Part shown: in pieces, positions 18,232 to 31,067 of the stretch
Layout of the letters: every line of letters starts with the position of its first letter
Numbering within the stretch: position 1 is the stretch's first letter
Assembly (NCBI GenBank): GCA_964036045.1
Contig: OZ038378.1
Coordinates: 53,816,001-53,880,000 of the forward strand
Length of the DNA stretch: 64,000 nucleotides
Source: Eutreptiella sp. 'Long Island Sound 2002'
Taxonomy: Eukaryota > Protista > Euglenida
Direction: 5' to 3'
Position numbers and translations under genes: made by a program
Notes under the pieces: generated by a model
Database searches by the model: none
The model's input: the letters and a program-made list of their open reading frames with translations, nothing else
What the model was told of the DNA's origin: nothing

Positions 18232-19000
18232 TCAATTATGGCTCGTCTTGGCCTGATTGGCTAAGCCGAAGGACCTCCTGCACTTCAATATTCCGGTTGC
18301 GTTCCCCATGGGTAACGTAGTCCATGACTGCGATTGGGGTTGTCGACCTGCTGGTACATTCCATACAACACGCAAAGTGCTCGAGTTGAGCTTGGTACTG
18401 ATTGTGGCATTGACCATGGCACCTTGCATCGTCCCCTACGTACGCACAATGTGTGTCACCCTCCTATTGTGTTTACACTGGAATGACGTTGTCCCGGCTT
18501 GTTCTTACGCCAAGCAAGTGCTGGAGGCCATCTTGAGTCGTCTCGGAACCATGTGCCGGGTGTGCCCACAGAGGAAGACCTTGGAACATACCTTAGACCT
18601 ATTCTTCACCACCAAAGCGCGGAACGAACAAGACACGGGGCGCTTTCCCAGTGTGTACGTTACAATTATGTCCGGACGGCTTCACTTAATTTTGTTGGCC
18701 ATCACGACAAACCGTAGGGTGCATCTTGAATCGAGTAGTGAGGAAAACGACGCGTTTATCGCTGTTTCCGACGACACCCAAATTTCCGACCAAACCGCCA
18801 GGCAATGGTGGGGAGACTTTCTACCACATATTCCTCACAAGGTCCATGTGTCTAGTGACACGTGCTACGTGCCTCCCCACATATCAAGGCCCGCGGTCAC
18901 AATTCTTCGTACGAGAGACCCTTGCAAACATGTTGGTAGAGATGCACACGTTCACGGGGTATTTCCCTTCGTACGCACTTGAGCGCAAACGATGTTCCGG
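18232..19000 (-). pseudogene. Decayed relative of the accessory ORFs
   Basis: NSSTLRVVWN resembles ORF-C NARPIRVAWR. The downstream 20-mer gcaattttgtgtcctaatgg (18162-18181) recurs at ~25929-25950. Confidence 0.4.
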
Positions 19001-19403
19001 CCAAATCCCTCCACTGTTCAAATAAAAATGGCCGAAACAAAAAACGTTCGAAGTTGATTTCCCCCCCAACTAGGCACACCCATACATGCCAAGAAAATAT
19101 GTTGTTAGCTAGCCTAGCGGCACCCCGCTATTACTGTCACATTTGGTGTATTCCGTGTTGTTGAGCGAAAAATACTGGCACTCAAAAACACTTTTTGCCG
19201 GAACACCACCGGAACACCGCCGGAAGAAGTTACCGGAGGACCACCGCAACACACAAGCGACACAAAGAGCAAAGTGTGGATAATGGGTAAGTGAAACATA
19301 GATTGTTGGTTAGGGTGCCAGCAAGGGCACATGGGGTTAGGCTCTTTGTACGTCCCTTGACTACTCCTCCAGCGGGTAGGCGCAGCGCAAGGCACCCCGG
19401 AAC

Positions 19404-20150
19404 TTACCTCTCCTTCTCCCTCGTCGACCGCCCGCTCGTGACCCACCATGCCTTCACCCTCCACCTCGGCGACCTCCACCCCCATGCCCTCATCCCGGCT
19501 AGCCGCCAGTGCACCGTCACTTGCCCTTGGCCCATCTTGGGCCCTTGGCCTCCCCCATCCCCATCCCCATCCCTGTCCCCGTCCACGTCCCCGTCCCCGT
19601 TCGTGGTGTTCGCGTCCTTGTCGTCGTTGTCACCCTCTCCCTCTTCGACCGCCTCTGTCTTCTTCCACTTCTTCTCGAGCAATCTCTTGGCTTGCTTTTG
19701 GGTCCGCCACACGGCCTCCTTCGGCACCCGAAAAAGTTCCACGTCCCCCAGGACTCTCACCCATGTTTCTCTTTTGCGGCGGTCCACCCGTGGCAAGGGC
19801 CTCCTTGCCGTTCTCAATCCCCCACACCCACTTGTCGCAAAAACAAAAACGACATAATCATTTCCCCGCGCCTTGTAATTACACACACCCCCCCCCCCCC
19901 GCCCCCCTTGCCTTGGCCTTGGCCTCGGGCTTGGGATGGGGGTATCCCTTGGCATGTCCGCCATTGGGCATGTGGGGGTGGCTCGGGGCGAGGGGGTTTG
20001 TCTTCAAGATGGGCTTGGGGGCCTTCTTGGGGGGTCGAGGAGTAAGGGGGTGGTTTTCTCTTTGGGGGGCTGGGGGGTCTTCTTGCTGCGTAGGGGCGAG
20101 TCGGCAAAACAAGCGGACGAGTTGGAGATAAGGGAGGAGGAGGCCGTTGC
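19404..20150 (-). pseudogene. 3' half of interrupted accessory ORF of outer element (ORF-D) with Tudor-like module
   Basis: ATASSSLISNSS... continues ORF-B in frame. Later DYVVFVF...WVRVLGDVELFRVPKEAVWRTQKQAKRLLE parallels the ORF-C module. One TGA near 20004. Confidence 0.6.
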
Positions 20151-20152
20151 GG

Positions 20153-20183
20153 CCCTAGTGGCCCAAATTAAAGTCAATATGTT
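20153..20183 (+). repeat. Left TIR of inner transposon
   Basis: ccctagtggcccaaattaaagtcaatatgtt. Confidence 0.9.
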
Positions 20184-20582
20184 TAATATTTGGCCAAAAA
20201 TTAACACGTTAATCTCAAGTTTCAATTTTTTTTAGGGGGGGTTAGGGGTTTTGCCATGAAAATTATGACCCCCACGGGTTGCCTTACCGGCTTGGATGTC
20301 ATTTTCCCCCGGGGGTTGGTGGGGGGGTCCTACCCATGTGGTTGTTTCAAAATGTTAAAATGGCTCTCGGCTTTAATTTTTGTTTTTAATTTTTCCATTA
20401 AATATTTGAAAAGTTAAAAATTAAAGGGTCGCCGGCATTAATATTAATCTCACAAATATTAACTCATTCCCCCAAATATTAACCCTCCTCACAATGGCAC
20501 AACGCAACATGGAATGCATCATGTGTGTGTTTATGTTTCTTGTCCATGGCCATTGTGGCCCCTTGGGTCCCTATCCGGGCCC

Positions 20583-23070
20583 TCATACCTCGTGGGACCC
20601 CGTAGTGGGGTCCCACATCTTTGCGGGTCCGGATGGGAGGTTAGTGGGGTTAGTGGGGTTAGTTGGGTTAGTGGGTTCGGTGGTAGGGTTTGCTTTCGGG
20701 GGGTTAGGCGTTTCGTTTGTGGGGGTGGGGGGTTTGGTCTTCTTTGGGCCCTCCGCCCGGGCCTCTTCCCGGTGCCGCTCGGCCTCCTCGGGGGTGGGGA
20801 AGAGGAGGGAGCGGTTCACCTCGTAGAGGGTGGTGCCGCCCGGGTATTCCACCCAAACGGCACCGTACTTCCGCCCGTGGATACCACGGACGGTGCCCCT
20901 CTCTACGCCTTTGGGGTAGGGTACGTGGACGACCGTCCCGATGATCGGATCCTCGGGACGGTCGTCCTTCTTCTCGGCACCCTTGGGGGTGTCGGTCTTG
21001 GTGGGGGGGGCGGGGTTGTGGTGGCGGTCTTGGGGGGGGGTTGGTGGGTTTGGGGGCGGGGACAGCCTTCGTAGGCCGTGCGGTGGTGGTGGTGGTGGGG
21101 GGGTTTCGGCCTTTTGGGCCGGGGGATCGCCCCGTCGTCGCTTTCGTCCGACGAATGGAAAGAAAACTTTCGTTTCTTGGTTGGGTGCCTGGGGGGGTGG
21201 GGCTTCGCTTGGGGGGGGTTTGGGGCGGTGGTGGTGGACGCCCCCCCCCCCCTCCTCCCCCTCGCTCACCCCGCCCCCACCCATGCTCCCCCACATCTCC
21301 TCATCCTCCCCCCCCGCGTAGCCCACCTCCTGCATCCGAGCCCGCTCCGCGGGCCGGAAGTGGCGCGGCGCCACCCATACACCGCTCACCACGCGCGAAG
21401 TCTCCCAAACGTGGAGACCTCGCAAGAGAGCAAGGCCCAAGGGTGGGTCTCGGGCCACGATCCGATGGAGGGACCCCAGGGGTACTTCCTGGGATCCTTC
21501 GGCGTCTCGCCAGGCCACGCGGATGGGCCTGGCATTCGTCGCGTTGACCACGACGTCAATAACCTAAAAACAAAATGAAAGAAAAATAAAAATAGATTAA
21601 TTTTTTCAGCGACATTTTTAATTTTTCGACTTTAATATTAACTGCTGACTTTTAATATTTCGACCGGCAGCGCAAAAATTAAATATTAACCTCGAGAAAT
21701 TAAACGTGCCGTCCTAAAAATTAATGCACGCACGCAAAACACATACCTCAAAACTCCCGTTCACTCCGCCTGCCTGAACTGCCCCCATGGCTTCCCAGAA
21801 GAGCGCGGCGGCACTATGCTACACCACAGGGGCCACAGGGGCTCCCGCGCTGGCCATCGGGGCCGCCTGGGCCCCCGGTTTGGCCGCGGTCGCCGACTTG
21901 GCGGCGCGGGACTGGGGGACCAAGCCCTCGTACGAGGGCTGGCACCCCGGGTCGTAGATGGGGCGGGGCAGGGCCAATACAGTGGCCCAGTCCGCCCCGA
22001 AGGCCACAGCCTTGCCCTGGCGCCGCTGCCTGACCCAGCCCAGCTGGGCCCAGTGCTGCAGCAGCACCAGGTAATGCGGCGTCCCAAAACGGACGCCGCG
22101 GGGGTCGAAAAGCAAATTCAGTGCGGGCAAGGCGCCCACACTGATTCCCTCTGGCATGGGGGCAAGGGGGGCACCGGGAAGGGTTTTCCAGACCCAGACC
22201 CCCCCCTGGAGGCATCCTTACCCCAGGTGCCTCCGTGTTTCCCCTCGTTCCGGCGGATCCAACACCGGATCAACCGCCGAAAAATCCACATGGCTGTTAC
22301 GTGGCTATGGGGGGGGGGAGGAAAAAACGGGTTGATCCCCCGCGCACCCCTCTTGCAGCACCTGGGCTGAATAGGGGATCGGCCCCGCCTTTCGAGCGGT
22401 GGCAGATTGGGGGCCCAGAGCTTTGAGAAGCCACTGGGGGGGGGGGGGGGTCATTGGGGGGGTCAACAACCTCAACTACCCCGTCCCCGTCCCCCTCGTC
22501 CACCACCACTTCCCCCTCCCCCTCATCCTTGACCCCCCCCCCCCCAGGCTGGCCTCTACCCCCCCCCTGCCCCTTGCTCCTCTCCCTCTCTCTCCTCTCC
22601 CTTTTCTCCTTCTTTTTCTTCTTCTTCTCCTTCTTCTCCTTCCGCCGCCTATCGGAGGAGTCGTCGCTTGACTCCTCGGTTGGCGGTTGAGCGGCGGGAG
22701 GAGGTGCTTGTGCTAGTGCTGGTGCTGGTGCTAGTGCTGGAGCTGCTGCTGCTCTTGGATGAGCTGCAGCCAGTCGTTGCTCCACTTGTGCCATCTAAGA
22801 GAGCGAGAGGATGAAAATGAAAATTAAGAAAAAATTAATTTTTGTGCACCCAACTTAATTTCTTGAAATTAATATTATCCATCGAAAAATTAATTAATAT
22901 ATTAAATATTAATGACCGCGCCTATTAATATTAATCTCAAAATATTAAACGGATCGACGGAAATATTAATTCGTATACGCAAGCAAGCATGCACAAGCAA
23001 AACACATCAGGGCTTCGTTGTTCGCTTTGAACATGTCGGCCAACATCTTTTGCATGGTCGAGGCGTCCAT
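20583..23070 (-). CDS. Accessory gene of inner transposon (ORF-C): coiled-coil N-terminus, K/E-rich NLS-like tract, Pro-rich linker, Tudor/SH3-like module
   Basis: Putative exons ~23070-23008 (MDASTMQKMLADMFKANNEAL; donor not canonical), 22794-21747 (acceptor ctcttag|ATG, donor GAG|gtatgt; one frameshift, one TAG) and 21563-20583 (acceptor tttttag|GTT). Exons are separated by AT-rich introns. Confidence 0.65.
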
Positions 23071-24996
23071 GGCAAGGAGAAAACAAAGCTAGTGGTGGGG
23101 AAGCAAGGGTGGAGGTCGGGGGGCTATGGGTGGCCATGAGTTTGGCCATGGTGCATGGGGCGGTAGGGGGGGTCCCGTAATTGCGTAGCGGAAGGTCAAA
23201 TTTTAAAAACCACCACTCCCACACTTGGGAAACTACCTCCCCCTCCCGCTCTACTTGGGTTGCCCCCGGCATCCCCCCCCCCCCCCCCGGCCCGAGTGGT
23301 CATTGTATGCGCGCTTAAGGATGGCGTTGAGGCTCTCAACGACATCCGCGCACACGGCACCCAACCCAACCCCCAAGCGGCGTGCATTGGCCACGGCCTT
23401 GGTGACATCCTTCTCCAAATACAGGAGGTAGTTTGATTGACACGCCTCCTTGCAACAATGTGCACGGTAGGCGCGTGCCACCTCAGCCGCACGTAGGTCC
23501 CCGCGGGGCGGCTTGTCCGTGTACAATTTCCGGAGGAGGTCACACATGGCCACGACGGCTTGCCATTTGCCATCCTCCGGGACGTAGTCCAACAACGGAC
23601 CAAGTTCCTCCCACGCGAGGAACAACGCACGGGCCTCCTCCCCGTCGGGTGCCCCCATGGCATCCAACTTCACACCCGTGCGGGCCCGGTAGAGGACCCG
23701 TTGCACGGCGTCGGTGTTCTCCTTGGGGAGGTCCACAAGGCGTGTCTGGATGAACGCCACTTGGAGCCGGCCAATGGCCATGCAACAATGGAGGATGCAT
23801 AGGAAAACCATGCACCGGTCAACCACAATGTGTGGATCCCCTATGCATCCCCCATTTACCAAGCTACGGCCGGTCTCCTTGTAGCGGCGGCAGGCCGCCT
23901 CCTCACTGTCCAAGGTGCGCCGGGTCTCCACATTGACCCATGCCGCCGCAACCTTGTCCCACACCCCCATATTGTAAATTCAGCCCACCAAGGGCGAGGT
24001 GGACACACCGATAAGGCGCCGCACGAACGGTTTGTCTCCCCCGATGACCACCCTGCTTGGCACCCAGCGTGACACCCAATGAAACTTCTCGCAGTCTTGT
24101 ATGCACTGCAATACCTACAAAAAGGACATGGATTAATATTTACATTAATTTCTCGAGATTAATATTAAGTTAAATTTTCAGTCGGCGTTGATATTAACCG
24201 AAAACAAGATATTAATCTCGAGAAATTAACGCAAAAAACGCAAAAATTAACAAACAACGAATGGGCCACAAACCTTCAAGTTGTCGGCCCATATCGTTGC
24301 AAGTGACGCCATGTCCTTGTCCCCGCATACGGCCATCCCTATCACCCACAAGTACGCGGGTGTGCGGCCCCGTGCGCCGTGGTTGAGGAGCCCAATGGAG
24401 AGTTGGGTCCAAGTACCACCGGCGCACGGGTACGCATCCCCACGCACAATGAAGGTGAGGGGCCTTGTCCAATCGATGGTCTCCACTAGCGATGGGTGTG
24501 ATTGGACGTACCGGGCCCATGAGGGTAGCGGCCAAGAGCGCCCACTCGCGGGGGGATCGGGGACGGACACGGGTGGTTGTAGGTCAAGGGGGGTGACCAA
24601 CTCCTTCCACGCGTCCGTGAACGCTTCCCGAGTGGGGATGGGTTGGGGGAACTGGAGGCCCGTTGCGGCCGTGTAGACCGACCCCCGGCGGCTCATGTAC
24701 TCCATCATGTGGCGGAAGCCAACCTTGGGGACGTTCAAGTTCATGAGGAGGCCGATGAGGTCCGGAGCCGGGAAGAGGTGGGAGGCATATTGCTTCACCG
24801 CCTCCACTTGCTTAGTACGAATAAGGGAGGGGTAGCCAACCTCCATGGCCTCGGACCATCGGGCCCGGGCCAAAGGGGATGAGGCCACCCACTCACCAAG
24901 GGGTTGGGAGACCAAAGGGTCCCGCAAACTCTTGGCCCCGCTCAAACACACGAGCGTCATGTTAAGCTCGGTAAGGGTGTCCCGAGAGAAAGGCAT
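22937..24996 (-). pseudogene. Spliced DDE transposase (CMC/Transib-RAG1-like), one in-frame TGA and one poly-G frameshift
   Basis: Exon 1 24996-24274 (MPFSRDT...DNLK, 241 codons), GT-AG intron 24273-24115, exon 2 from 24114. Motifs: FIVRGD (D 24436-24438), VVIGGDKPFVRRLIG (D 24034-24036), CILH, NY...GLGAVCADVVESLNAILKR (E 23335-23337; compare RAG1 SIGAWASEGNESGNKLFRR). TGA at 23980-23982, frameshift at the G-run ~23275-23288. Confidence 0.8.
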
Positions 24997-25266
24997 AACA
25001 AGGGCTATACAAGGGAACATGGTGGTGTGGAGGGGGGGGGAATGCGGGCAACCGGAGGGGGGGTGTCCAAGACGCCCGCCAACACAACATTGGAACCTCT
25101 CTACTATACCGTTGTGCAACAATATACCACGTAACACCCCTTATAGGTCCGCATATGTGCATGGAAAAATGGATACAAATGGCCCAATCACAAAAATTTA
25201 ACTTTAACCTCTTAATATTTGCGACATTAATATATTAACGCTCTCATGTATTAGAAATTAAAAATT

Positions 25267-25297
25267 AACATATTGACTTTAATTTGGGGCACTAGGG
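25267..25297 (-). repeat. Right TIR of inner transposon
   Basis: Reverse complement reads ccctagtgccccaaattaaagtcaatatgtt, one mismatch to the left TIR. Confidence 0.9.
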
Positions 25298-25765
25298 GGA
25301 CTTGGAGGAGGGCTTCGATGAGGACTGGCCCGGAAGCCTCTTCCTCTTTTTTGGGCGGCGTGTGGAGGGGGCTGTGCGTTTTCGGTTGGAGTTCGTTTTG
25401 TTTTGGGGCTGGGGTTTGTTTTGGCCAGGTGGTAAGGCTTTAATTTGGTTTGTGGGGCAGGTTTTCGGATTAGGGTGTGGGCTGGGGGGCGTCGGGTGGG
25501 CACTCATGACGGTGGCTGCTAGTTGTTGGCTCTGAGCGGGGGCCGGCGACAAGTCGTCAATGCCGCCCCTGCCCTCCACTTGCGTCTCCAAGGCGCCACC
25601 GCAGCCGGCCAGATGGTCGGCCAGTACCATCGGCACCTCCAATGCTTTTATTGGTTCTAGGTGCACGTCGTGCAGCAGGGCGGTGTAATCCACGCGCCAG
25701 GGGTCGCATGCAAACCACCGCATGATGAGGCGCATCGCCCGCAGGTCACCAAGATTGATCTGCAT
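25298..25765 (-). pseudogene. 5' half of interrupted accessory ORF of outer element (ORF-B)
   Basis: MQINLGDLRAMRLI...SSSKPSSKS ends exactly at the inner TIR. INLGDLRAMRLI...DYTALLHD resembles ORF-C ISVGALPALNLL...HYLVLLQH. Confidence 0.65.
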
Positions 25766-26047
25766 CTCCTCGGCGTAGAGACAGGCAGCAGAACAATGTG
25801 CTCCGGTGACGTTCCGGCAACTTGTTCCGGCCGTTCTAGCGACGTTCTTGCAGCTTTCTGTGCTATAAACTGAACACCGCCGGAACACGTTGATGGAACG
25901 TCGCCGGAACAGGGCCGGGGGGAACACCACGCAATTTTGTGGCCCTAATGGCCCCTATGGCATCCGGCAAAGGGGCATACCCGCACTCAGTCGCGGTTCC
26001 CTTTTAGGGCCGCTCCGGCCTGCCGCAGCTGCGCGGACGACGTCCTC

Positions 26048-27446
26048 TCACTCTCCATGCACCGCGTTCAAGTGCTTGCGCTGTGTGTCTGTCTGGCACT
26101 TCACGCGGAGGGCACTAGGGCGCGATAGGGTGTGGCCGGGGACGTGGCCGTGGTACTTGTTCTTGTGCGTGACCCGATAGATCCCCTTCTTCAGTATCTT
26201 GACCCAGCTTGGCCGGAAGATCACAGTGTCCTTTCGCGGAGTTGGCTTCATATCGCCCGCACGATGGTCAGCCCCACGCTCAAAAATGAGCTGCCAGTGG
26301 CAGCTGCCTGCCACTTGCCTCGCGGCGGGAAGCAAATTTTCCACTTGGACGTGACTGGGCAGCCCGTCATTGGGGAGGGGTGCTGTGCGCCCGGACCCCG
26401 CCCTTGTCACCCATGTTGCCAAGAACAGCACCTGGTGCATCCCCATCCTCCTCCCGGCGCCACTGGTAGTGGCTCTAGGCCTTGGTGTGCAACTGCTTCC
26501 AAAGGGAGCGTTGCAACAACCACTGAAGATTGTAGATGGTGGGGTTGGGGGTGTTCAGCATGCAAGCATCGGGTGCAGGGGGGGGGGGGGGGGCATCTCC
26601 CTTGTCTCGGGGAAGTTGGCAGCTTTGGCTGCCACGCTTGAACACGACCTCTTGCGCATTGCCTAAGTGACATGCAAGAGGCTGGGCCCAGCCCCCCCCC
26701 CCCCCTTGTAGACTCCCAGCCCCCCTTCTTCCTCCTCGGCAACCACAGGGTTCCCCTCAGCGTGCCCCTCTACGCCCACCCCAAGCTGAACAATGCCGTC
26801 CGCCCCTTCCTCTACCTTCACGCCACCGTCACGTGTGCCCCCACTGGCCAGTTTCGCCTCCAACTACTTTAGTGCCCTTTATGCCTCCTTTAGGCAGCAC
26901 TTCCCCTCCAAAAGCTTCTTCGCCTGCAGCCATCCCCCCGGGAACATCTCCAAGCTCCCGACAACGACCCAGCTTGGCCTTCCATCTGGGAACCTTCCCT
27001 CGGAGGCTTTGCAGGTTCCCCCTTGCCTCCTCCACATCCCCCAACACCACACCCTCATCTGCCCCCCCCCCCCCGTCACTCCCCATTGTCGGGCACGGGC
27101 AACGGCGGATGATCCCCGTTCACTTTGTTCTTGTCGTTATTGTCGGTGTCGTTGTTGGTGTTGGTGTTGGGGTTGGTGTTGACGAGCTGGGGCGGTGTTG
27201 GGGTGGCCCATGGTGCCCGTTGCGCTGGGGCGGCCCAAGCGGGCCGAGTAGGTTGATTAGGGGGATTGTTGGGGGTGCATGAGGGTCTGTCGAAGCCAGC
27301 ACACAGCTTGTGGGTGGGCATGAGGCAGTGGTTGTAGGGGTAAGGTCCAGGGGTGGTGCTGCCGGAGTTTGGCGCAGTGCGTCCCCCTCCGACGTCTGGT
27401 CCTTTGAATAGATGAAGGAGGGCGTGTTGGGGGAGGGTAGTGTCAA
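26048..27446 (-). pseudogene. Frameshifted ORF-A of outer element, function unknown
   Basis: Patchwork of overlapping minus-strand ORFs broken at G/C runs. Its C-terminal part (HGHVPGHTLSRPSALRV) resembles translated 18232-19000. Confidence 0.45.
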
Positions 27447-27634
27447 CTACACCTAACTTTCTTGTTTTGGGGACGTTCCAGTAACTTGTTCCAGCGGTGT
27501 TGCAGTGCCCGCATGAACACCGGCGGAACGTTCCCGGAACAAGTTACTTCAACGTCGCCCGAATAATTAAAATGAACAGCACTTTTCGCGCGCCCATTGT
27601 GCACAGCGTGCACCATGACCCCTCAGCGGGGGAG

Positions 27635-27945
27635 ACCTAGTGGAGGGCACTGCCCCTTGGGGCTCATGGGACCGCACAGCGGCCCGTTCCGCCCCTGGGC
27701 GTTTGGCTACTCCCTCAGGGGACCACATAGCTGGGAGCACTGCCCCTAGGGTTTCGGCTACCCCCTCAGGCGACGACATAGCGGCCGGTGCTGCCCCTCG
27801 GGAAGGGTTAATGCCTCGGGGCAAGACATAGCGGCCGGTACTACCCGTCGGGTTTGGCTACCTCCTTAGGGGGCAACATACGTAGGGCACTGCCCCTAGT
27901 GGCTTGGCTAACCTTTCAAGGGACAACATAGCTTGTGGCACTGCC
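27635..27945 (+). repeat. Degenerate ~50-bp minisatellite
   Basis: gcactgcccct...ggcta...acatagc recurs about six times. Confidence 0.7.
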
Positions 27946-29275
27946 CCAATTCCACACCCCGCGCAATCGCCTAGGCCTTACCCTTCCGCCCCTAGCAAAG
28001 GCCACTCGCGGCCATGGCATGCCATTCGCTTAGCCCCCAGACCACGCCCCTTCGCCCCTAGCAAAGGCCATTCGCGGCCCTGGCATGCCATGGTGCACAT
28101 GTGACACACTACACATGATGCTTGATGCACATATTCACCCACATGCATGCACACACAACCACCTGCATGTTTCGTGTTGCCCTCAACAGAGCGGTCAACA
28201 TGCCCAGCAAACCGGTGTTGACGGGCATGGCCATGTTGTGGAACAGAGGACAAAAGTGAGCTAAGGAAGGGCGGTGCAGAATGGGTTGCGGACTCTAGGG
28301 AAGCCCTGGGAACACAAGGAACATGGCGAACAACATCGTGTTGGTGCAGCTGGATGTGATATATATGTACATATGTCTGTTTTCGTGGGGGGGGGGGGAT
28401 TGGGGGGTTTTTGGGGACCTAACAAGTTTTTTGGCGAAATAGGCTCAGTGCGCAAAAATATCGTTCCATAGGGGGGGGGGTATGTGTATATTTTCGGAAA
28501 AGTGCTTGAAAAGGGCTTTCCAATGAACTAGGTCCCGGGCTCCAAGGTGCTAAGATGATGGAGATATTGTCTGTACACTTTTTTCGATTTGGTTTCCCGC
28601 TGCCGCCAGATTTTTTGTAACATGTGTGTGGACACACAAATGCGAGGGAAAATGGACCGCTGCTTGAGTTGAGCACCTTGTTGGACTATTCTTCTTGCAT
28701 TTTTGAACTCGTCACATCAAAATGCACCATTATACCTTGTATGGTTTTTGGTTGTAGTGACGATATGTTGGAACTATGGCCGATTCTCTCCCAAACCCTG
28801 GTGACCTCTGTATTCTGCAAAGACATGCCAAAATCCTAGAAACATCAAACTTGCGCCCTGATTTCCGAATAAATATGGTCTCCTACCACCCCCTAACCCA
28901 TACATATCCGAAAAGCCCTCCTCTCGGAGATTCCGAAAACTTCACCATAGCCCTACCTACGGAACAACCTTTTTCCGGAATTCAGCCTCCACCGACATAC
29001 ATGTGCAATCTGTGCAACCAGCTCTGCAACATAACATACTATTTTTGACCAAGGTGTGTACAATCATGGGCAATTTTCTCCAAAATATGGTGTCCTGACC
29101 CCCCCCCCCCCCGAACCCATACATCTCCGAAAAGCCCTTTTAAGGGCTTTCCGAAAAGGTACAACATAACCCTCCCTTCCGGACAGTATATTCCAACAAA
29201 TTCGCTAAAACGGGCAAACCCTCCGTTAGTTCCCCAGTCCCCCCCCCCCCCCGGGAAACAGACAGATATATAAAC

Positions 29276-31067
29276 CTATGGGAGCACCGGCCCCAGGGCG
29301 TCAGCGTCTGGCTCAACAGAGGCCTCCATGCGTCCACATGTACTTTGCCCGGTTGCCTTTTGCTTGCTACCACCCTGGGCATTGTGCTCGTTACAGGCTT
29401 GCTTTACGAAGCTGTTCAGACGTTTAATGATGTTGTTGGAGAACATTGCCCTGCCGAAAGGCCATATGTCCTCCAATAGGCGGTCTGCATCCGCCTCCAA
29501 AAATATGAGGTACCGTGACGCATACCTGGGCGCACAATGCTCGCGGAATCGCACCTGCTATAACCGGGCACTGGGGGCGGGCACCCACTCATAAAGTGTG
29601 GTACACGTCCCACAGCACCTGTGCCACATACACGACCGCCTTGTAGAGCGGCTCATACGGTGCCACACCCAACAACAAGGCTAGGTTGAGCCATACAGCA
29701 AAGAGACGAGAGGTCTCCTCACCGTTCGGGGGGGTCCTTCCCCAAATGGCACCTAGTGCGTTGATCATGCAGCGTGGCCTGCATGGTCACGCGCGTTACC
29801 CGATTACAGGGCGCAATCTGCTCATTGGCAAACCGTTCCATGTTGCCATTTGTAGCCGCCCGAGTGCCATGCAAAAGCGCAAAATGCACATGACCACCCA
29901 ATAGCGCGCAGTGACCACCACGGGGTCCACGGAGCAGCTGACGCTTTAAGGGACGGTGTCCCTAACTAGAAACATGTCCGCTGCTCATGATCCGAGTCGT
30001 TCGTTCGCACCACATCTTTGCCCATCCAAATGCGGGCATGAGAGTCCCACATGGTCTCATGGTATACAGACCCAATTTTTGGCCCGGTGAATTCCCAATG
30101 ATTAGACGCACCCAAGGGGAGTAGTCCCCCAACCAAAGATGGGTCGGGTGATCATGGGTGTCATAGATGACCTGTTTGGTGTCCACAAGGAGCTGGATTG
30201 CTTGAAAAAACAAAGGCAAATTGTTGGAACCAAATTTTTCCAACGGGCGTTAAAAACAAATGGTAGGAACACCGGCCGAACGTCGCGGGACAAGTTACCG
30301 GAAGGTCGCCAGAGCAATTGTTGGTGCACAAAACACACCTCGATGTTGGCTTTCCAAAGGGTTGCCAAGGTGGCCATTTGCCTCTCCCCACAGATGGCGA
30401 GCCTGATGACCCATACGCATGCCGCGATGTGTCCCCATAGGCCCATGTTGTTCATTCAGACTCTCAATTGGGACCACTCCCCATCTACGCATGGAGAGCC
30501 ATCGCCCCTTACAAAGAATTTCAAGGGGAAAGACCAATCAATCATGCGGCACAACGGGGGCTTGCTCGCAATGTAGCGAAGCCACAATGCCCTCGGCCAA
30601 CTGACACCTGTGGCCTTCGCAGCGGATGTGCTCACCAAGGGTTCCAACTCAAGCGGCAGGGCGAACAGCTCGGGGGAGCGCTGCTAGAAAGCCCTCTTGG
30701 GGCAGATTGGGCGAGCAAACGGCAACCCAATAGTTGCCGTGTACTCCAACCCCCGGAGGGTGTAGACCTCGGAAAGGGTACGCCATGCTGATTAGGGCGC
30801 ACGTAGTTTTAAGATGCGTTCGCCACACTCAAATGGGGGAAGGACCTCGGAGGCGTACTTAGTGATTGCCTCTTGCTCCACCTCCCGTACACAAATAGGT
30901 TGGGCCAAACACAGGGCCACAGCAAATTGGCTTCGCGCGTGTGGGCAGGAGATGGCCCATTCTGCCAAAAGCTCCCCTACAAGATACTTGTCTTGAAGGC
31001 ATAGGGCACCCGCCAAAGGCACAACATGGGTGGTTACTTCCTTAACCCGCGTCTTTTTCGAAGGCAT
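29276..31067 (-). pseudogene. Decayed paralogous CMC-type transposase
   Basis: Colinear with the 22937-24996 protein: IDWSFPLKFFVRGDGSPCVDGEWSQL vs IDWTRPLTFIVRGDAYPCAGGTWTQL; MATLATLWKANIE vs MASLATIWADNLK; CILRFCMALGRLQMA vs CILHCCMAIGRLQVA; RYLIFLEAD vs NYLLYLEKD. Same intron position (donor 30338). Multiple stops and frameshifts; third catalytic position reads K. Confidence 0.8.

Follow-up and report, generated by a model that had tools for sequence, protein, structure and literature searches.

The transposons of the RAG1-Transib-EnSpm/Mirage/Chapaev (CMCT) clan, which include EnSpm/CACTA, Mirage, Chapaev, Transib, Plavaka and ESTA as well as Lanisha, generate target-site duplications (TSDs) of 2–5 bp (PMC12730594), and animal CACTA-type elements (ENS1_Cis, CMC-NA) make a TSD of 2 bp (PMC6004678). 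DNA transposons of Euglena are barely characterised: about 33% of the repeats in its genome are unclassified, DNA elements account for 4.6% of the genome (PMC11252322), and the literature that we searched describes Merlin families alone (PMC8101967). Here we analysed a stretch of 64,000 nucleotides (hereafter the window) from the euglenid Eutreptiella sp. 'Long Island Sound 2002' (assembly GCA_964036045.1, contig OZ038378.1, positions 53,816,001 to 53,880,000, forward strand). Positions 20153–25297 of the window are confirmed as one copy of a multi-copy transposon with terminal inverted repeats (TIRs). This copy is very probably a non-autonomous member of a cut-and-paste family with CCCTAG TIRs, a 2-bp TSD and an aspartate-aspartate-glutamate (DDE) transposase of RAG1 fold belonging to the CMCT clan, and it lies nested in an older relative. 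Its boundaries are as follows.

20153..25297, minus strand: whole element, 5,145 bp, with all coding blocks on the minus strand
20153..20183, plus strand: left 31-bp TIR, beginning CCCTAGTGG
25267..25297, minus strand: right 31-bp TIR, finishing CACTAGGG at 25297
20151..20152, unstranded: left TSD copy (GG), adjoining the left TIR
25298..25299, unstranded: right TSD copy (GG), adjoining the right TIR

A first, sequence-only reading of the window had described TIRs of 31 bp matching at 30 positions. This identity was reproduced over the 31 bp, and a repeat finder extended the arms to 38 nt at 89%. When the 2.28-Gb genome was searched with the TIR 31-mer at up to 3 mismatches, 445 matches were obtained (224 forward and 221 reverse) versus none for the reversed 31-mer used as a control, which puts the repeat far outside chance expectation. 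Similarity among copies breaks off exactly at CCC in the 35 ends sampled, outside which the flanks are unrelated; all 35 read CCCTAG...CTAGGG, and none of them ends elsewhere. Deletion derivatives of 1.5–4.9 kb retain both ends.

The GG dinucleotides reported for the two flanks are present, and tabulation of end pairs showed an identical dinucleotide on both sides in 8 of 10 (GG, AA, CA, TG, GG, CA, CA and CC). In the chromosome-scale assembly all five plus/minus pairs that were readable at the retrieved loci match (GG in the studied copy, AA, CA, TG and GG), the TG pair belonging to a 2,967-bp deletion derivative that keeps both ends. ERZ25074135, a contig-level assembly of this same genome, contributed five further full copies, three of which have matching pairs (CA, CA and CC). 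No fixed target sequence is visible among the TSDs read.

The flanks of the studied copy are themselves repetitive: both are parts of a different repeat, and for each of them 40 or more paralogues were found, at 72–85% identity. Sixteen uninterrupted paralogues were aligned with the studied flanks joined through a single GG; they are colinear with no indel at the junction, and the sole length variation across the alignment is an upstream (GGA)n run. The uninterrupted paralogues read ...CCGTTGAGGACTCC..., and the joined flanks read ...CCGTTGCGG followed at the junction by ACTTGG. The sequence-only reading had taken the TSD as confirmed by restoration of an outer open reading frame (ORF). On the minus strand, deletion of 20151–25297 does lead ...SSSKPSSKS (ending at 25298) into ATASSSLISNSS from 20150, so the in-frame joining is true. 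However, all three frames of the joined flanks are open through the junction (267, 180 and 137 codons); frame restoration alone therefore cannot tell TSD lengths apart, and this part of the argument is weak. The outer ORF does occur in uninterrupted form: in 28 paralogues, 172–411 stop-free codons span the insertion site. The paralogous empty sites are stronger evidence for the ends and the TSD than the reading frame. Because the genome-wide TIR matches, the end pairs and the empty sites agree, the CCC...GGG ends and the 2-bp TSD are solid, and the proposed ends at 20153 and 25297 are upheld by both the end pairs and the colinear paralogues.

The interior of the element is made up of the following blocks.

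24274..25137, minus strand: transposase exon 1, 288 open codons, with its first ATG at 25020
24115..24273, minus strand: intron 1, 159 nt, phase 0, GT-AG, with a strong AT-rich hairpin inside
22981..24114, minus strand: transposase exon 2, carrying the predicted second catalytic D and catalytic E; 3' limit at about 22981
22795..22980, minus strand: AT-rich spacer, either an intron (TGC/GTATAC...CTCTTAG) or intergenic with a possible trans-splice acceptor
21745..22794, minus strand: segment B, 1,050 nt, with an ATG right after the acceptor (MAQVEQRL...), open to 22300
21564..21744, minus strand: putative GT-AG intron (GAG/GTATGT...TTTTTAG), AT-rich with palindromes
20586..21563, minus strand: partner coding block, 326 codons, starting directly after the 3' splice acceptor (TTTTTAG/GTT)

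At least two exons, divided by a GT-AG intron, encode the transposase. The donor AAG/GTTTGT closes exon 1, the intron ends in TTTTTGTAG, and these splice sites are retained in most aligned copies. The relative P0203 is uninterrupted and carries no intron where exons 1 and 2 meet; the final exon-1 residue aligns with its residue 101 and the opening exon-2 residue with its residue 102, in exact support of a phase-0 splice.

A structural model of the exon-2 product (predicted local distance difference test, pLDDT, 77) gives this half of the enzyme a RAG1/Transib-type fold. Foldseek placed RAG1 at the top of its list (E 8e-5 to 2e-3). Consistently, VIA-align superimposed the model on RAG1 residues 694–1008 over about 275 aa with Z of 14–16, and gave Z of 14.4 for the amphioxus RAG1L (BbRAGL), 8.6–11.9 for HzTransib, 6.3 for the P element and 4.4 for Hermes. 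The RAG1, ProtoRAG RAG1L and Transib structures compared were PDB 4wwx, 6xny, 6b40 and 6pqn, to which sequence identity is 10–18%; a phmmer search of PDB with the exon-2 ORF returned no match. Towards the ends of the superimposed range, exon-2 D14 falls on RAG1 D708 and E247 on RAG1 E962. In the model, the second catalytic D would thus be encoded at 24036–24034 (GGDKPF) and the catalytic E at 23337–23335 (VVESLN). A candidate first catalytic D lies in exon 1 at 24438–24436 (VRGDAYP), placed by its GD motif and by pairwise alignment to P0203, and the resulting candidate D-D-E spacings are 81 and 233 residues. Two weaker leads agree independently: a protein atlas gives RAG1_ZnC2/ZnH2 clusters at 0.92, and a profile search yields a colinear, though non-significant, alignment with RAG1L.

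An exhaustive HMMER search yielded 505 relatives of the transposase, some with 31–48% identity over the whole exon-2 product. Alignment of 17 relatives (A1) showed the conserved motifs GGDxPW..RLLG, LHCxMAxGRL, APDGEET and DVVESLNRxLK, with a single invariant His, in LHC. Many of the 505 sit on short metagenome or Logan contigs, and the lineage may occur outside this genome. Seven relatives with 31–43% identity (P0136, P0138, P0145, P0152, P0203, P0205 and P0212) are on ENA-metagenome or Logan contigs of 1–6 kb.

The studied copy had been called apparently young, which overstates the case. Other copies are 88–97% identical to it (3–12% diverged). The studied copy keeps exon 1 and the partner ORF open, and most other copies carry stops or frameshifts; the partner block is open in only one of eight. 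Exon 2 of the studied copy contains a private TGA at 23982–23980, where all eight other copies read TCA. The same locus in ERZ25074135 is 99.994% identical over 16.6 kb, and the same truncated ORF of 239 aa was called there. A poly-C run at 23263–23288 changes the frame relative to intact copies. Across the 16.6 kb compared, the two assemblies differ only in another homopolymer at about 22435–22450 (C15 versus C16), so the poly-C frameshift may be an assembly error, as may frameshifts within the many poly-G/C runs of this genome. Given the TGA and the possible frameshift, the copy has lost the capacity to produce transposase itself and is non-autonomous; given the same TGA and its divergence from the other copies, it is neither intact nor very young. 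At least one other copy (L092) has both transposase exons open.

Some further copies differ in layout. A third TIR is located 3.7 kb upstream of L092. L093:5841-10194 and L094:5841-10100 are 4.3-kb elements with the same TIR type, a near-identical exon 1 and TSDs of 2 bp (CA in each). The rest of their interior differs, with 64–68% overall identity to the studied family, whereas the two are 85% identical between themselves; they represent either a chimeric family or a sister family.

The repeat into which the element is inserted proved to be a transposon itself.

18965..20152, minus strand: host transposon, left part, with a sharp left end starting CCCTTCGTACG
25298..30983 (at least), minus strand: host transposon, right part, including the host's own decayed transposase homologue

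At least 26 paralogues of the host transposon share a terminus of the CCCTTGGCACGCG type with unrelated flanks. The host transposase homologue, at 30983–29369, is on the same strand as the inner transposase, shows 34–55% aa identity to it and contains stops; judged from this similarity, the two elements are related through their transposases. Searches that allowed up to 3 mismatches, or as many as 8 errors, did not locate the right end of the host, and when the partner ORF was compared by tblastx with the host ORF found at the insertion site, the only matches were Pro/Ser-rich stretches of low complexity. The outer "ORF" interrupted by the element is thus part of a related transposon of greater age, which likewise has CCC at its start. 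A member of one CCC-ended family therefore lies nested in an older member of a related one.

Five AT-rich modules occur about 1.2 kb apart in the element, at about 20372–20482, 21567–21725, 22816–22970, 24114–24250 and 25212–25290. They are based on a palindrome of the type TTAATTTCTCGAGATTAATATTAA and are sited in introns or spacers and beside the TIRs; some hold a GACTTTAAT motif resembling the inner part of the TIR. The RNA of intron 1 is predicted to form a long hairpin (-39.6 kcal/mol, z -5.7), and the 24-mer arm has about 999 genome matches at up to 2 mismatches. The modules could be protein-binding sites or intron structure.

On the reading of the element as a DDE cut-and-paste transposon, the transposase would bind the TIRs and then cut at the CCC/GGG boundaries; as RAG and Transib do, it would probably nick the DNA and leave a hairpin on the flanks. 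The 3'-OH ends would be joined to target phosphates staggered by 2 bp, and repair of this stagger would leave the duplicated dinucleotide. The studied copy would move only in trans, with enzyme supplied by copies in which both transposase exons are open.

Several alternatives were weighed against this account. The matching dinucleotides might have arisen by chance, in an element that makes no TSD or one of a different length. Two of the ten pairs do mismatch (TA/AT in L031 and AC/TT in L092), and some flanks are G-runs (in the studied copy and L028), which blurs the boundary. However, with 1/16 expected for each pair, eight or more matches in ten would occur by chance with P of about 9e-9; no pair favours 3 bp, a length supported by none of the ERZ25074135 end pairs; and the paralogous empty sites accommodate exactly one GG. 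We regard coincidence as highly improbable, and the pair table and the empty sites rule it out. Mismatched flanks such as those of L031 and L092 are an outcome expected from inter-copy recombination or flank mutation. The number of genes is a more balanced question. The sequence-only reading had proposed two; separate coding blocks are present, but two genes are not established, since GT-AG introns intervene and the partner ORF, because it begins exactly at a 3' splice acceptor, could be either a separate, second gene or an exon further downstream. In the exon case the product would be a single long spliced protein whose transposase carries a Tudor-like module at its C-terminus. In line with this, the coding blocks are all on the same strand and divided by AT-rich GT...AG spacers, exon 2 closes in phase 0 at TGC/GTATAC and the next block opens in phase 0 after CTCTTAG, and the Tudor-like block opens right behind TTTTTAG. 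The splice sites of the two downstream spacers (22980–22795 and 21744–21564) are intact in L031 and L092; L095 has CAA instead of the acceptor AG ahead of the partner block. On the other side, in segment B (22794–21745) every frame is interrupted in each of the six copies examined, the ATG behind the acceptor at 22795 would, in a trans-splicing organism, also fit the start of a second gene, and similarity among the transposase relatives fades shortly past the W.FLYF...PR..C motif. A single spliced protein is possible, though we do not favour it. The partner block contains a candidate Tudor/SH3-like stretch at about 20770–20945; its ORF has no match in Pfam or PDB, and a word search with it found same-genome copies only. 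Separately, the Euglena spliced-leader 24-mer has 5,458 matches in the genome (control, 0), dispersed along the chromosomes and not only in arrays, and the genome is Euglena-like.

The family assignment can be weighed in the same way. The ends of piggyBac elements begin CCCTAG, and the termini here, 5'-CCCTAG...CTAGGG-3', resemble them. A piggyBac-type element would nevertheless have a TTAA target and a transposase with three catalytic aspartates (DDD), neither of which is present: the matching flanks are GG, AA, CA, TG and CC, never TTAA, no Pfam piggyBac transposase matches, and the enzyme folds like RAG1. This assignment is ruled out by TSDs and fold together, and we give it practically no credence. 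Tc1/mariner elements share the 2-bp TSD but target TA, which is found in 0 of the 8 matching TSDs, and are ruled out by target sequence. The RAG1/Transib-type fold of the exon-2 half instead places the element in the CMCT clan. It might then be an ordinary member of the EnSpm/CACTA-Mirage-Chapaev (CMC) group, nearest to its 2-bp-TSD types and representing no distinct lineage. A TSD of this length is known in CMC (in animal CACTA-type elements, PMC6004678, and within the 2–5 bp of the clan, PMC12730594). As En/Spm does, the element has a second coding block downstream of its transposase; among solved structures there is none from CMC, so RAG1 as the best structural match is not contrary to such membership; and the first-D motif, GDxxP......W..L.....N.G, has what we take to be a CMC-like appearance. 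Against it stand the lack of a match to Pfam Transposase_21 or any other family, the absence of the defining zinc motifs of the clan, C(2)C with H(3-4)H, from the 17-sequence alignment, and termini that are CCC...GGG, not CAC...GTG. Ordinary CMC membership therefore seems rather unlikely to us. We tentatively consider a separate euglenid branch of RAG1-fold transposons distinct from EnSpm, Mirage, Chapaev and Transib, which would lack the zinc sites and be marked by CCC...GGG ends, a 2-bp stagger, spliceosomal introns with TIR-like palindromes and a Tudor-like partner; this is conceivable but short of probable.

Placement of a cut-and-paste element with a RAG1-fold transposase in the CMCT clan has points against it as well. 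Besides the two mismatched end pairs, no ORF of the element and none of the 17 relatives matched any Pfam family, even at an E of 10. A profile search against solved structures found RAG1L at E = 1, which is non-significant though colinear; in that alignment an LHCxxxG-type motif and a YL....E.V stretch align, and YLLYLEED stands at RAG1L YLHKVIEH, so the zinc-binding His pair of RAG1L appears to be replaced. Neither a conserved Cys pair nor a conserved His pair, as in the zinc motifs of the clan, occurs in alignment A1, and clan ends are usually CA...TG (CAC...GTG). The model of exon 1, built from a shallow multiple alignment, has a pLDDT of only 39; its strand-strand-strand-helix arrangement around the GD motif fits the start of an RNase H fold and was not counted as evidence. 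We class the element as a variant inside the RAG1/CMC-type clan and assign it to no named superfamily.

Several hundred copies can be annotated against the exact ends, TSD, intron structure and fold-level assignment given here. A RAG1-fold transposase with a 2-bp TSD and without the zinc motifs of the clan, in a discobid protist, broadens the known range of RAG1, Transib and CMC enzymes, and the family offers a test of whether the zinc sites are needed for catalysis. If a separate branch without zinc sites is borne out, a RAG1-type core would work without the two zinc sites.

Compared with the CMCT clan, the element is alike in being a TIR-bounded cut-and-paste transposon with a short TSD (2–5 bp in the clan, 2–4 bp in CMC, 2 bp here), in its predicted DDE enzyme structurally related to RAG1 and in a possible second gene, which clan members often have; it differs in lacking the zinc motifs, in its ends, its lack of a match to family profiles (Pfam Transposase_21, Plavaka and RAG1 domains) and its euglenid host. 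With RAG1, ProtoRAG RAG1L and Transib it shares the core fold, on which the second D and the E take equivalent positions, whereas those systems have a 5-bp TSD and heptamer-like CAC ends and RAG1L has its zinc-binding His pair. The animal CACTA-type elements ENS1_Cis and CMC-NA resemble it as TIR cut-and-paste elements with a 2-bp TSD and deletion derivatives but end in CAC...GTG, a comparison made on TSD and ends. The element is a well-documented example from a class already known and does not represent a new mechanism.

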